Both the position numbers and the translations under genes were made by a program. A model generated the notes under the pieces. It worked only from the letters and a program-made list of their open reading frames with translations. It was not told the origin of the DNA and made no database searches. From sequence record NC_009452.1: a DNA stretch of 23,814 nucleotides; one strand, 5' to 3'. Positions 333-23,513 of the stretch are shown piece by piece (position 1 is the stretch's first letter; each line of letters opens with the position of its first letter).

Positions 333-346
333 TATTTAAGCTTTTT
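333..346 (-). promoter_or_regulatory. BRE/TATA-like element in ITR, facing the terminus
   Basis: AAAAAG-CTTAAATA on the - strand; same core as at 6062 and 20681. Confidence 0.5.
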
Positions 347-744
347 GGTATTTGTGTCATGAGTTGTTGTCATGTGTCTCTGGTTATAATGTGTGTGGTA
401 AAGGTTTAAAAAACTTTCGGTTTGTGAGTGGGTATTATTGTTGAGTGTTTGTGTTTGAGCTAGGTTTTGTGTTTGTGCTTGTTGTGTTATTGGATTGTTG
501 GATTGTTGTATCATTGTTTGTCTGTTTTGTTCTTATCTTACTGGGATTATTTAAAGCTTTCTGTGACCTGGAAGGTGAATAGGATTTAATAGAGAGAAAA
601 TTTGGAATGTGAAAAGTATGTATGATTTCTAGTGACGTGGGGGGTTCGGATACCGGGGTGTCCCCTCCCCCCCGGGTACCCTCTTGCCTAGCTAGCGTAG
701 TTTGTATTTTTCTAAGGGGGTATTCTGACCGGGTCTAGGGTAAA

Positions 745-1740: not shown

Positions 1741-2481
1741 TTAGCTTTCAATTTCATCATACTCATCTTCTATTGTTTCGTCAAGAATTCTTCTGGTAAT
1801 TTCTTCCTCTATTTCCTCTGGAGTTAACTTAATCTCAACTGGGGCTTTTTCTTGGTATTCGTTAATCATTTGTCTGTAAGTTGGTTCATTATTAGACTTT
1901 GGTCTTTCTTCTGGGACAACTGGGTTTTCTTCATCCATTTCTTTGATTATGGGAACTTTATAGTTATTCCTTATTCTATCTAATAGAGTGTTAATGGGTA
2001 TGCTTAAGTTGAGTTGTAATGCTTTGTCAAGTGACATGTGATAAATTCCAAGTTGTTCTCTAACGTAATCGGAAACTACGGCGTCTATTGCGATTTTAGT
2101 CAATCCCACTAGAGAACCATAATACTCAGTTAAACCGATTAAAAAGTCTCTGTTATGTCTATACTTGCGGGAGAAGACTATCCTATCAATGTAATACTGT
2201 TCGAAATGCTCAACATACACATCAGAATTCCATGTTGGCAATGGATAAATACCATCATCAGAAGTGAGATAAATCTTGTAAATTTTAGGCTGTTTGGTAA
2301 CGGCGTTTATAACAAGTTTGTTAAATTCTTCATTATCAATTGCCTTATCGGGACCTTCTTCACTGACAATTTCAAGTAAGGTTAAGAAGTTTTTGTACTC
2401 TGGGTATAACTTAAGGTATTCATCATACCATTCTTTTAATCCGTTTATTACATCACTGAACTTTGTTTCCATACAGTTCAC
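1741..2481 (-). CDS. ORF246, unknown function, acidic C-terminus (candidate terminal or virion protein)
   Basis: Long ORF directly after the polymerase. The more likely start is the ATG at 2472, because the GTG at 2481 overlaps a GGTGA SD. TATA at 2506-2513. Confidence 0.85.
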   Translation of the reverse strand: MNCMETKFSDVINGLKEWYDEYLKLYPEYKNFLTLLEIVSEEGPDKAIDNEEFNKLVINAVTKQPKIYKIYLTSDDGIYPLPTWNSDVYVEHFEQYYIDRIVFSRKYRHNRDFLIGLTEYYGSLVGLTKIAIDAVVSDYVREQLGIYHMSLDKALQLNLSIPINTLLDRIRNNYKVPIIKEMDEENPVVPEERPKSNNEPTYRQMINEYQEKAPVEIKLTPEEIEEEITRRILDETIEDEYDEIES

Positions 2482-20505: not shown

Positions 20506-20666
20506 CCCTCCTTATAATTATAGGAGGCGTAATACTTGGAAATGAACTCATTATTAGCCTATCTAGGTCTTACCGTCTACATAATCATAAGATGGCTTAT
20601 CGAAAGCATAAACATAAAACTCAAGAAAATTATGAGACTTTTGCGTCAGATAAAAAGAGAACTTAG
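20493..20666 (+). CDS. ORF57, TM plus basic/His-rich tail (not in ORF track)
   Basis: MEPLTLLIIIGGVILGNELIISLSRSYRLHNHKMAYRKHKHKTQENYETFASDKKRT; overlaps the ORF88 end. Confidence 0.5.
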   Translation: MEPLTLLIIIGGVILGNELIISLSRSYRLHNHKMAYRKHKHKTQENYETFASDKKRT

Positions 20667-20685
20667 AAGTTGTAGAAAAGCTTAA
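20542..20685 (+). CDS. ORF47, TM plus basic tail, overlapping ORF57 in another frame
   Basis: AGGAGG at 20522-20527 upstream; MNSLLAYLGLTVYIIIRWLIESINIKLKKIMRLLRQIKRELRSCRKA. Confidence 0.45.
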   Translation: MNSLLAYLGLTVYIIIRWLIESINIKLKKIMRLLRQIKRELRSCRKA

Positions 20686-20688
20686 ATA
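20675..20688 (+). promoter_or_regulatory. BRE/TATA for ORF150
   Basis: GAAAAG-CTTAAATA, 31 nt before the ATG. Confidence 0.65.
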
Positions 20689-20718
20689 GGATTTTAACAA
20701 TTTATTATTTGAGCAAAC

Positions 20719-21171
20719 ATGGCACAAGTTGAAGAAAAAATCCAGGTAAAAGAAGCATTAGATTTAATAGAAGAAGTTTTTGATAATCTTGAAGATTTAG
20801 TTTTTAACGTTGAAGAAAAAGTAAGGCATAACCCAAACATACCATACCTTTATGATTTTATTGATTCCTTATACAAAGTCGTAGGTACCACTAAGAGTAT
20901 AATCGAATACATAATGGACAACATACAACCCCAAGACATTTACTCCACTTTAGATTTCTATAGGTCATGGTTAGCATACATTCAAAGGTTACTATACGCA
21001 AATCTTAAGGATCTCAACATGACTGAGAATGTAATGGGTACTGTGACTTACATTATCGCTAACTTATACAAATCTTTTAGAGAATTCAAGAAAAATAACG
21101 AGAACAGACAAAACAAAGTTGAAGGTATAGTTCTTAACCCTAATACTCCCATACCCACACGTGAATTATAA
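20719..21171 (+). CDS. ORF150, helical acidic protein
   Basis: Own promoter and downstream pyrimidine tract; amphipathic helices. Confidence 0.85.
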   Translation: MAQVEEKIQVKEALDLIEEVFDNLEDLVFNVEEKVRHNPNIPYLYDFIDSLYKVVGTTKSIIEYIMDNIQPQDIYSTLDFYRSWLAYIQRLLYANLKDLNMTENVMGTVTYIIANLYKSFREFKKNNENRQNKVEGIVLNPNTPIPTREL

Positions 21172-21200
21172 CCTTTTTTCTTTCTTCTCTCCTTCTTCTT
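21172..21200 (+). terminator. Pyrimidine-rich terminator after ORF150
   Basis: CCTTTTTTCTTTCTTCTCTCCTTCTTCTT immediately after the stop. Confidence 0.55.
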
Positions 21201-21204
21201 AACC

Positions 21205-21218
21205 AAAAACTTTAAATA
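21205..21218 (+). promoter_or_regulatory. BRE/TATA for ORF158
   Basis: AAAAAC-TTTAAATA, 33 nt before the ATG. Confidence 0.65.
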
Positions 21219-21250
21219 CTTTTTCTGACTAATTTTTACTCAGACCCAAA

Positions 21251-21727
21251 ATGAATAAAACCCTAATTGGTCATTTAGATGTAAGTTCTTCAAACCTAAA
21301 CAACTTGGCATACAAGATCTACAGTACTATAAAAGGTATGATAGAGAATTTCGACATGGTAGATAAAAGGGCTATTGTTTACATGCTCAAGACATACAAA
21401 GAGGCATTCGAAATAACACTTTCCGATTTCGAGTTTGTACTAAATGAGTTACCCACAGAGGATAAACTGTATCCATACATTGATTACCTGGTAGAGAACT
21501 TAAAATACGGATTTGACGCCTTAGACGAATTAATCTACATTGTTGATAGAGAATTTGATGAAAGGAATGATAACTTCAAGAACTTGATAAAGGAGACATT
21601 GAGTTTCTTGCAAGACATTACCTATTGTGTACATAACTGGATTAAAGAACTTAGAGACATGTTAACAAACACAAACCAGACTGAAGAAGAAGAAAACTCC
21701 AACGATTCCGAATCAGAGGAAGATTAA
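21251..21727 (+). CDS. ORF158, helical acidic protein, paralog of ORF83+ORF64b
   Basis: Aligns with ORF83 (VDKRAIVYMLKTY vs VDKGILINMLRTF) and ORF64b (FDERNDNFKNL vs [11 protein letters not shown]). Confidence 0.87.
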   Translation: MNKTLIGHLDVSSSNLNNLAYKIYSTIKGMIENFDMVDKRAIVYMLKTYKEAFEITLSDFEFVLNELPTEDKLYPYIDYLVENLKYGFDALDELIYIVDREFDERNDNFKNLIKETLSFLQDITYCVHNWIKELRDMLTNTNQTEEEENSNDSESEED

Positions 21728-21767
21728 AATTTTTTCTTTTTATTACTTCTTTTCTTGGTGATCTTGG

Positions 21768-22207
21768 ATGAATGATACGTTTTATTATGAATTAAAAGAG
21801 AATGTCTCTAACCTTAAGAGTCTATCAAAAAAGTTGTACGATTATGTAGATACCTTACTAACTCCCAATTTATCAGTTGATAAAGGTATACTAATCAACA
21901 TGTTAAGAACATTCGCTAATCAAGTTGACATAACTTATTATTATTTCGAATTAGTAGAAACCAAAATCGATTCTGATGATCCCCTTAGCCCAGTTATTAG
22001 TACTTTGAGGGAGTGTTAATGGTTATTGGTAACTCAGTAGATCTTTTAATTGATTTGATAAATGAGAACTTTGATGGTAATGATAACGCTTATAAAAACC
22101 TGGTCAGATACATTCTTAGGTTAATTGATTGTTCGGTCACTGACATACAAGATAGTGTATTCATGTTCAAACAACAATCTGATACTGATGATAGTGAAGA
22201 TAATTGA
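21768..22207 (+). pseudogene. ORF158 paralog split into ORF83 (21768-22019) and ORF64b (22013-22207) by a 1-nt frameshift
   Basis: Adding one T at TGT-TAA (22014-22019) gives a 146-aa ORF that aligns to ORF158 without gaps across the junction. It could be a true split gene or a sequencing error. Confidence 0.7.
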
Positions 22208-22227
22208 TTTTTATAGGTGATTAAGAC

Positions 22228-22581
22228 ATGAGCGAATCTAAAAGAAAGTATTATCTTCCTTATGAAGTTAGACAANACTTTGATGCGGTTGCCGGAAGAA
22301 TAAAATACATGATTTGCCAATTTGAACATGAACATGTAACTGGTCCTTATGACGCCGTTATTTTATTTGATGGATTATTGCTACGATTAAAAGACTTAGC
22401 CGAGAATGATTTCATTGATGAGAGAATTGAGCAAGTAAAGAATGTTTATTACCAAGTAGGAAAGTTCAGTGATAACATTGTATGGAATTATGAAGTACAC
22501 AGATACTATCACCCTGATGAAATTGTTGACTTTATAGAAGTTATTTATGACTCTCTCAAAAAGATTTATGAAATCGAGTAA
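22228..22581 (+). CDS. ORF117, helical acidic protein
   Basis: AGGTGA SD; one ambiguous base at 22276. Confidence 0.8.
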   Translation: MSESKRKYYLPYEVRQXFDAVAGRIKYMICQFEHEHVTGPYDAVILFDGLLLRLKDLAENDFIDERIEQVKNVYYQVGKFSDNIVWNYEVHRYYHPDEIVDFIEVIYDSLKKIYEIE

Positions 22582-22589
22582 GATAAAAG

Positions 22590-22922
22590 GTGATCCGCAT
22601 GATAGAGGAAAACGTAAAAAAATTTAACCAGATTATTGATGATCTACTTGAAAGGTCAAAAAACACCTATGTTTATGATCCTGACATTTACAAAGACATA
22701 CGAAACGCTCAGATCTTTCTTGTAAAGTTTGCTCAGTCTGACATTAATCCGGAGTGTATAGACATTCTACATAAAGCTTTCCAAACGCTTTCTGACGCTT
22801 ATTATGTTGTGAGATGGTATGTCAAACAAGACAAAAGACATGTAGTTAGAGTATTAAAGGAGAAATTCAATACGGCTAAAGACCTAGTCTCCGGTATTAA
22901 CTCTGAGATTTGTGGTGAATGA
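22590..22922 (+). CDS. ORF110b, helical protein (ATG at 22599 likely)
   Basis: AAGGTGA SD overlaps the GTG at 22590. Confidence 0.8.
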   Translation: MIRMIEENVKKFNQIIDDLLERSKNTYVYDPDIYKDIRNAQIFLVKFAQSDINPECIDILHKAFQTLSDAYYVVRWYVKQDKRHVVRVLKEKFNTAKDLVSGINSEICGE

Positions 22923-22978
22923 TCTTAAGATACCAAAAACTTTTTTAACCTCTTTTTCTATTTATTTACTTGATCAAC

Positions 22979-23380
22979 ATGTCCATGAAAGAATTCGTTC
23001 AAAAGTTAGACGAAATTCAAGCCAGTTTTTCTTCCCACTTCCCATTAGTTATCATAAACTCAAACTACAAAATAGACAATGGAATTGTTATTTTCGGTAA
23101 GAAAGGTTGGTTAAGGATTAATGAATCAGTACCGATAATGATTAACTACGGTTCACTCATTTTATTAGACACTCCAAAGAATTACATGGTAGGAGTTTAC
23201 AAAAACGTTAACGGCGGGAGAAAAATTAAATCCTATTCACCTTCCAGGTCACAGAAAGCTTTAAATAATCCCAGTAAGATAAGAACAAAACAGACAAACA
23301 ATGATACAACAATCCAACAATCCAATAACACAACAAGCACAAACACAAAACCTAGCTCAAACACAAACACTCAACAATAA
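22979..23380 (+). CDS. ORF133, hypothetical protein whose last ~51 aa are encoded by the ITR
   Basis: Alpha/beta N-terminus; crosses the ITR boundary at 23225 and ends in an N/T/Q-rich tail. Confidence 0.75.
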   Translation: MSMKEFVQKLDEIQASFSSHFPLVIINSNYKIDNGIVIFGKKGWLRINESVPIMINYGSLILLDTPKNYMVGVYKNVNGGRKIKSYSPSRSQKALNNPSKIRTKQTNNDTTIQQSNNTTSTNTKPSSNTNTQQ

Positions 23381-23513
23381 TACCCACTCACAAACCGAAA
23401 GTTTTTTAAACCTTTACCACACACATTATAACCAGAGACACATGACAACAACTCATGACACAAATACCAAAAAGCTTAAATACCAGTTTCACACAATACA
23501 TTCACAGAGAATC

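Follow-up and report, generated by a model that had tools for sequence, protein, structure and literature searches.

Two gene modules at the right genome end of Acidianus bottle-shaped virus: a four-helix-bundle family and a predicted two-subunit complex

The linear genomes of Rudiviridae and Lipothrixviridae carry variable terminal clusters in which accessory and anti-CRISPR genes occur in several copies. In Acidianus bottle-shaped virus (ABV), the right end of the genome resembles these termini in its position beside an inverted terminal repeat (ITR), its fast divergence, its paralogue turnover and its small proteins without database matches. Here, we describe the block of open reading frames (ORFs) at 20719-22922 of the window, i.e., of the whole stretch of 23,814 nucleotides that was analysed (NC_009452.1). 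The window is the complete ABV genome, 100% identical to EF432053/NC_009452 (23,814 bp). Only a handful of ABV proteins have a named function, and the rest are without known homologues (profile of the international virus-taxonomy committee, ICTV). The nearest functional precedent for the bundle proteins encoded in the block is the ORF145/RIP-ORF131 family of Acidianus two-tailed virus (ATV; Bicaudaviridae). Four-helix bundles are the major coat proteins in ATV and in Acidianus tailed spindle virus (ATSV), and ORF145/RIP inhibits the host RNA polymerase; this coat-protein duplicate of ~145 aa has a four-helix bundle as its core and needs its C-terminal tail for binding (PMC5123050). ATV and ABV are both viruses of Acidianus convivator from Pozzuoli, and their proteins share a length of ~130-160 aa, a four-helix-bundle core and a C-terminal tail; the likeness extends to growth of the family by duplication, which in ATV was followed by functional divergence (PMC5123050). 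Unlike the ATV proteins, those of ABV have tails that are strongly acidic and predicted to be disordered, and neither 3FAJ nor the RIP structure is among the top Foldseek matches in the PDB. An alignment of ATV ORF145 and ORF131 likewise yielded, against each ABV family, a best hhalign P of 0.025 and a probability of 2% or less.

The ORFs of the block correspond to GenBank ORF150, ORF158, ORF83, ORF62, ORF117 and ORF107, and their frames are open at the coordinates listed below. A first-pass annotation had described them as an array of orphans of 110-160 aa. They are better described as two modules than as five independent orphans. Module 1 comprises ORF150, ORF158 and ORF83+ORF62, tandem members of one ampullavirus-only four-helix-bundle family, of which ORF150 is a probable remote member. 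Module 2 is the Shine-Dalgarno-coupled gene pair ORF117 and ORF107. The earlier lengths and positions hold, except that ORF83 and ORF64b are one split gene and that the frame called ‘ORF110b’ encodes 107 aa. The proteins were also said to be helical and mostly acidic, which structure models and isoelectric points (pI) bear out (ORF150, 4.77; ORF158, 4.31; ORF83, 4.43; ORF62, 4.05; ORF117, 4.95), with ORF107 near neutral at 6.12. ABV2 supplied orthologues, as did seven short contigs from metagenomes (L004-L006 and L009-L012); all relatives but ABV2 are contigs of 1-1.4 kb. For pairs with unsaturated synonymous divergence, the ratio of nonsynonymous to synonymous substitution rates (dN/dS) is 0.07-0.18 in ORF158, 0.14-0.28 in ORF150, ~0.13-0.3 in ORF117 and ~0.17-0.3 in ORF107. 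The right-end ORFs are real genes under purifying selection.

The features of module 1, with the transcription factor B recognition elements (BRE) and TATA boxes of its genes, are as follows:

20674-20688, plus strand: BRE/TATA-like box AGAAAA-GC-TTAAATA of ORF150, ~31-45 nt before the ATG, read from the sequence.
20719-21171, plus strand: ORF150, 150 aa, pI 4.77, predicted helical bundle and probable remote paralogue of ORF158 (profile and Foldseek).
21172-21200, plus strand: pyrimidine/T-rich tract 3' of ORF150, likely an archaeal terminator, read from the sequence and kept in L004 and L010.
21203-21218, plus strand: BRE/TATA box CCAAAAA-CTTTAAATA of ORF158, an exact motif match.
21251-21727, plus strand: ORF158, 158 aa, pI 4.31, predicted four-helix up-down bundle with a disordered tail (AlphaFold2).
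21730-21761, plus strand: T-rich tract 3' of ORF158 (21730-21756), then the GGTGA Shine-Dalgarno site of ORF83, read from the sequence.
21768-22207, plus strand: ORF83 and ORF62/64b, one divergent ORF158 paralogue of ~146 aa, split between two frames (blastp, hhalign and contigs).

ORF158 is modelled by AlphaFold2 as a FAT-domain-like up-down four-helix bundle (predicted local distance difference test score (pLDDT) 88, predicted template modelling score (pTM) 0.79) with helices at residues 3-33, 39-66, 74-101 and 107-149. Its C-terminal tail is acidic, rich in Ser and Thr and predicted to be disordered, and similar tails are found in most members of the ORF158 family. The family corresponds to the ampullavirus-specific PHROG 25667/32595/35366, and when its profile was searched against 1.84 billion protein representatives, it proved limited to ampullavirus sequences. 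The only match outside them, to P0011, a 980-aa zinc-finger repeat protein (E 1e-4, five stretches), was dismissed as repeat-driven.

ORF83 and ORF62 are a single paralogue of ORF158, cut in the reference by an A run at 21998/21999 that is one base shorter. ORF83 matches the N-terminal half of ORF158 (blastp E 5e-11) and ORF62 the C-terminal half (8e-4), and the joined reading is similar to ORF158 over its full length and aligns with the ORF158 family by hhalign (98%). ORF83/ORF62 and ORF158 also cross-match each other's PHROG families. Contigs of four public hot-spring runs (X1, X2, X3 and X5), drawn from two independent metagenome studies, were aligned to 20600-23400. One contig in each of X2, X3 and X5 carries one extra A behind 21998 (reference TTATTAGT, variant TTATTAAGT). 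The extra A shifts the ORF83 frame into that of ORF62, opening a 146-aa frame that matches all members of the ORF158 family (E 2e-6 to 2e-17, with 5e-13 to 2e-17 cited for its assignment to the family), and the reference therefore carries a frameshift allele. Counted as depths summed over assembled contigs, which are not allele frequencies, the extra A accounts for 122/150 in X2, 3236/4055 in X3, 27/62 in X5 and 0/3669 in X1. The intact allele predominates in X2 and X3, and the split allele is apparently also natural. A further contig of X2 joins 21670 to 22208, a 537-nt skip by which the whole paralogue is gone; the gene is also absent from ABV2, L004, L005 and L006, and it forms a long branch within the ORF158 clade of the tree. 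A programmed -1 frameshift at the ORF83/62 junction was considered and rejected: the junction lacks a slippery heptamer, and what sets the intact allele apart is a single A ~15 nt upstream.

ORF150 has orthologues in ABV2 (gp48, 35% identity), P0006 (69%) and P0007 (44%). It probably shares ancestry with ORF158, as two weak but concordant lines, one of sequence profiles and one of predicted folds, suggest. Firstly, hhalign aligns ORF150 with the ORF158 family over 120 collinear columns across all four helices (probability 22%, P 9e-4), and the pairing of either with any other helical family gives P 0.027 or worse. Second, when the ORF158 model is searched by Foldseek against BFVD, a set of predicted viral protein structures, the top match outside its own family is gp48 (E 1.3e-3, TM-scores 0.70/0.77, root-mean-square deviation 3.4), and the E-value of the next match is ten-fold worse. 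The BFVD model of gp48 is a bundle; the ESM Atlas model of ABV ORF150 has a pLDDT of 0.58.

Module 2 lies directly downstream:

22228-22581, plus strand: ORF117, 117 aa, pI 4.95, predicted first subunit of a heterodimer, with a GGTGA Shine-Dalgarno site at 22217-22221.
22599-22922, plus strand: ORF107, 107 aa, pI 6.1, predicted second subunit of the heterodimer, with a GGTGA Shine-Dalgarno site at 22589-22593.

The start of ORF107 is ATG 22599, as in all orthologues, and GTG 22590 sits within the GGTGA ribosome-binding site. GGTGA Shine-Dalgarno sites stand ahead of ORF83, ORF117 and ORF107, and given these sites and the 17 nt that separate the ORF117 stop from the ORF107 start, ORF117 and ORF107 form an operon without individual promoters. 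The two genes are adjacent and Shine-Dalgarno-coupled in ABV, ABV2, L004 and L006. In L011, they are naturally fused in frame to encode 212 aa: 57 nt are lost in frame, which takes away the end of ORF117 with its stop codon as well as the Shine-Dalgarno site. The orthologues of ORF117 (in ABV2, L004, L006 and L011) share the invariant motif GK-x2-DNIVWNYEV. The ABV reference has an ambiguous N at 22277, in codon 17 of ORF117 (NAC), which, taken with the frameshift at 21998/21999, casts some doubt on the reference at the right end.

Structure prediction indicates that ORF117 and ORF107 probably form an obligate heterodimer through invariant motifs. The complex was predicted for the ABV2 pair, ABV ORF117 containing the N, from five-row alignments made for this analysis. 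Three values of the interface score ipSAE (0.91, 0.90 and 0.91) compare with 0.05 for the best of 3 controls; this mark is reached by 58 of 80 solved complexes and by 2 of 110 mismatched pairs, counts that hold only roughly with own alignments. Partner pLDDT is 93 or higher, and no fewer than 97% of the contacts recur from run to run. On the ORF117-type chain, 10 of the 12 interface residues are invariant and fall in the motif K55 ... Y74 ... GK-x2-DN-x-VW-x2-EV (P 1e-5), as are 6 of 14 on the ORF107-type chain (P 0.02), in a test that is not fully independent since the same alignments fed the complex model. Three features speak for the pair: its genes are neighbours and co-translated, they occur as a Rosetta-stone fusion, and the interface predicted for their products outscores the controls. 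ORF107 itself is modelled as a four-helix bundle, both in the AlphaFold2 model of the fusion (pLDDT ~80-90) and in the ESM Atlas (pTM 0.80). ORF117 is predicted to be helical, with low confidence in the AlphaFold2 fusion model (pLDDT 35-55), from which we make no claim about its fold, and with high confidence in the complex model (pLDDT 90). C53, H58 and C105 of ORF107 (region 22751-22922) are invariant in its family and may serve as a disulfide staple or bind a metal; H58 is one of the residues of the predicted interface.

The diversified helical-bundle superfamily that had been envisaged as a possibility for the array holds for ORF158 and ORF83/62 and probably for ORF150; it does not extend to ORF117 and ORF107, for which there is no sequence signal, though ORF107 is modelled with four helices. 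Comparison of ORF117 or ORF107 with ORF150/158, with ORF110/99b, with ABV2 gp49 or with a minus-strand orphan of L012 gave hhalign P values of 0.02 or worse, none of them significant. As judged from sequence searches, nothing beyond Ampullaviridae matches the block families. A Pfam scan of the block proteins returned nothing above threshold, including the families of known archaeal anti-CRISPRs, and significant PHROG matches were to the own family only, save the cross-matches between ORF158 and ORF83/ORF62, with none to rudivirus or lipothrixvirus families. Neither scan placed a block protein in AcrID1, AcrIIIB1 or AcrIII-1/DUF1874, with AcrID1 and AcrIIIB1 covered without direct comparison, and no similarity to any known inhibitor family emerged from the Pfam, PHROG, PDB profile and ATV hhalign searches. 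PDB profile searches with alignments A4 and A5 reached E 0.05-0.14 at best, which was judged chance. Scans of IMG/VR gave nothing with ORF158 or ORF107 alone and only ABV2 with an alignment of ORF133, the gene beyond the block; JGI metagenomes (alignments A2 and A6) and one genome per GTDB species (alignment A7) gave no match. Structural matches are of the generic up-down type and include FAT-domain-like adaptors (FAK/Pyk2 FAT, the p130Cas C-terminal domain and talin VBS), the TIP47/perilipin C-terminus and de novo bundles. At E 0.05 or worse and 5-17% identity (mostly ~10%), these matches reflect shared architecture and are not evidence of homology or function. Look-alikes of ORF150 and ORF107 in the ESM Atlas, with scores <0.85, were set aside as generic bundles.

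The block is the most divergent shared part of the ABV and ABV2 genomes. Most shared genes are 60-90% identical (polymerase, 82%; ORF243, 81%; ORF92, 91%), and identities at the right end are 44% for ORF57, 35% for ORF150, 43% for ORF158, 51% for ORF117, 63% for ORF107 and 55% for ORF133; at the left end, ORF99b stands at 45% and ORF110 at 62%. Copy number and gene order differ among relatives. The ORF83/62 gene is variably present, as described above, ABV2 has an extra gene, and in L012 an ORF107-type gene lies directly upstream of an ORF158-type gene. The low identity within the block (35-63%), the variable copies and order and the tolerated frameshift lend indirect support to the first-pass proposal of an accessory island. 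The extra gene of ABV2, gp49 (L002:20198-20503), encodes 101 aa between the ORF150 and ORF158 orthologues. Its weak likeness to the ORF110/99b family of the left end is only suggestive (blastp 1e-3, hhalign P 0.003-0.006) and may be a trace of exchange between the genome ends. The right-end array was said to mirror ORF110 and ORF99b, which are indeed paralogous to one another (E 2e-15, hhalign 98%); no significant link ties them to the right-end families. L012 also encodes, at 778-1143 on the minus strand after its ORF158-type gene, a 121-aa helical orphan with no detectable relative. L004 (GCA_026627085.1, JAPNUL010000611.1), a 1.4-kb ampullavirus fragment with homologues of ORF158, ORF117 and ORF107, is binned as ‘Firmicutes bacterium’, which is probably a binning error.

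The expression signals differ along the genome. ORF150 and ORF158 lack a Shine-Dalgarno site upstream, and the individual BRE/TATA boxes and the pyrimidine tract after ORF150 that had been noted for them are indeed present (20674-20688, 21203-21218 and 21172-21200); most central genes have a Shine-Dalgarno-coupled layout. Both boxes lie 37-40 nt ahead of their genes; the ORF158 box reads CCAAAAACTTTAAATA and is retained ahead of its homologues in L004, L009 and L010 despite otherwise diverged intergenic DNA. Its type, CCAAAA-N-TTTAAA, is common to ORF158, ORF133, the polymerase gene and ORF110. A scan for bacterial sigma-70 promoters and hairpin terminators, which does not apply to archaea, gave nothing above shuffled controls. 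The block ends at the following boundary:

22933-23380, plus strand: BRE/TATA box CCAAAAACTTTTTTAA and ORF133, assigned from sequence and pI.

ORF133 is basic (pI 10.0) and stands outside the helical families.

Taken together, the block is a fast-diverging, selectively maintained set of small soluble helical proteins confined to ampullaviruses. The block proteins have no recognisable catalytic or membrane feature, so they would act by stoichiometric binding: a rigid bundle, whether it carries an acidic tail or not, would dock on a host or viral macromolecule, for example on a basic surface that binds nucleic acid. As non-structural accessory factors, they would be produced alongside the replication genes, and the promoter type common with the polymerase gene hints at such co-expression, which is as far as the earlier suggestion of early expression can be taken. 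Duplication, decay and reshuffling would mirror adaptation to variable host targets. Our favoured reading, with slightly less than an even chance of being right, is that the proteins are binding factors that assist host takeover or counter-defence as accessories. A more specific and rather unlikely form of this idea is that the ORF150/158/83-62 bundles, and perhaps the ORF117-ORF107 dimer, are a new class of archaeal-virus inhibitors unrelated in sequence to known ones. The rigid four-helix bundle and its acidic, DNA-mimicking tail would plug a nucleic-acid-binding machine of the host, whether RNA polymerase, a CRISPR effector or some other defence complex; if so, these proteins and ATV RIP would have converged in function, and the gain, decay and loss of paralogues would record an ongoing arms race.

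Several observations weigh against an accessory role. The ampullavirus sequences found, most of them 1-1.4 kb fragments that each span only part of the block, repeatedly contain ORF150, ORF158, ORF117 and ORF107, mostly in the same order; such recurrence, together with the strong purifying selection, is just as compatible with a core role, for example in virion assembly. No single test brings the link between ORF150 and ORF158 to conventional significance. The folds are generic, and the PDB matches are all of a kind that any up-down bundle would give. The complex prediction rests on shallow five-row alignments, and the fusion is known from a single 1.2-kb contig. The resemblance to the polymerase promoter may reflect only a generic Sulfolobales consensus. 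All genes of the block do face the terminus, as had been pointed out, but their orientation is uninformative because the whole right arm, with every annotated gene from 10329 through the right end, lies on the plus strand.

The foremost alternative, unlikely in our judgement though a serious contender, is that the block encodes late structural or assembly proteins, i.e., matrix, scaffold or nucleoprotein-associated parts of the enveloped bottle-shaped virion. The block closes a long unidirectional run that includes the large putative structural/membrane genes ORF346 and ORF470, yet ORF150 and ORF158 are each equipped with a promoter and a terminator, in contrast to the Shine-Dalgarno-coupled central block. 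All four families recur under purifying selection in the ampullavirus sequences found, but among the shared genes they diverge most, against 60-90% identity for the structural genes, and the variable copy number, the tolerated frameshifted copy and the deletion alleles are likewise at odds with a structural role. [quoted passage not shown] Acidic proteins could also act as partners of the basic proteins in the nucleoprotein core, and the ICTV profile does not map virion protein composition to ORFs.

Less probable still is that the block proteins are accessories of protein-primed replication or end protection, acting as acidic DNA mimics or as partners of the terminal protein or polymerase, much like the small early proteins encoded near phi29-like genome ends. 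Acidic tails are typical of DNA mimics and of the tails that recruit single-stranded-DNA-binding proteins. The genes adjoin the ITR, and the promoter type of ORF158 and ORF133 is common to the polymerase gene; the block proteins, however, show no similarity to any replication protein in the Pfam, PHROG and PDB searches. ABV replicates with a protein-primed family B polymerase (ICTV profile), but the block diverges strongly compared with the polymerase (82% identity) and ORF243 (81%), and a variable number of paralogues would be unusual for core replication factors. Finally, that the ORFs are chance open frames or decaying, functionless remnants, as orphans without a Pfam or PDB match and with one frameshifted copy might be, is highly improbable given dN/dS of 0.07-0.3 in several lineages, confident structure models, conserved promoters and Shine-Dalgarno sites and, in the ORF62 frame, the fall of 7 of the 12 variants listed on third codon positions (P 0.07).

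Six ‘hypothetical proteins’ now resolve into a three-copy four-helix-bundle family, with ORF150 as its probable remote member, and a predicted two-subunit complex. Two gene models, those of ORF83/62 and of the ORF107 start, are corrected, and copies within the block are gained, broken and lost in hot-spring populations in nature. Few viruses are as poorly understood as the ampullaviruses, and the work provides concrete targets in them, with no new mechanism revealed yet.

Some further features of the window lie outside the block. The RefSeq record NC_009452.1 is marked circular; the genome is actually linear, with ITRs of approximately 590 nt that differ by 4-5 mismatches, and the right copy begins near 23225, within the tail of ORF133. 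Inside the ITRs, BRE/TATA-like boxes CCAAAAAGCTTAAA at 335-348 (minus strand) and 23467-23480 (plus strand) lie within ORF81a/b and point to the genome ends, and a second box, CCGAAAGTTTTTTAAA, stands ~40 nt ahead of ORF81a/b. ORF243 (1741-2472, minus strand; pI 4.56, 81% identical to its ABV2 orthologue) is encoded directly downstream of the protein-primed DNA polymerase and, being terminal-protein-like in size, is a candidate terminal protein.

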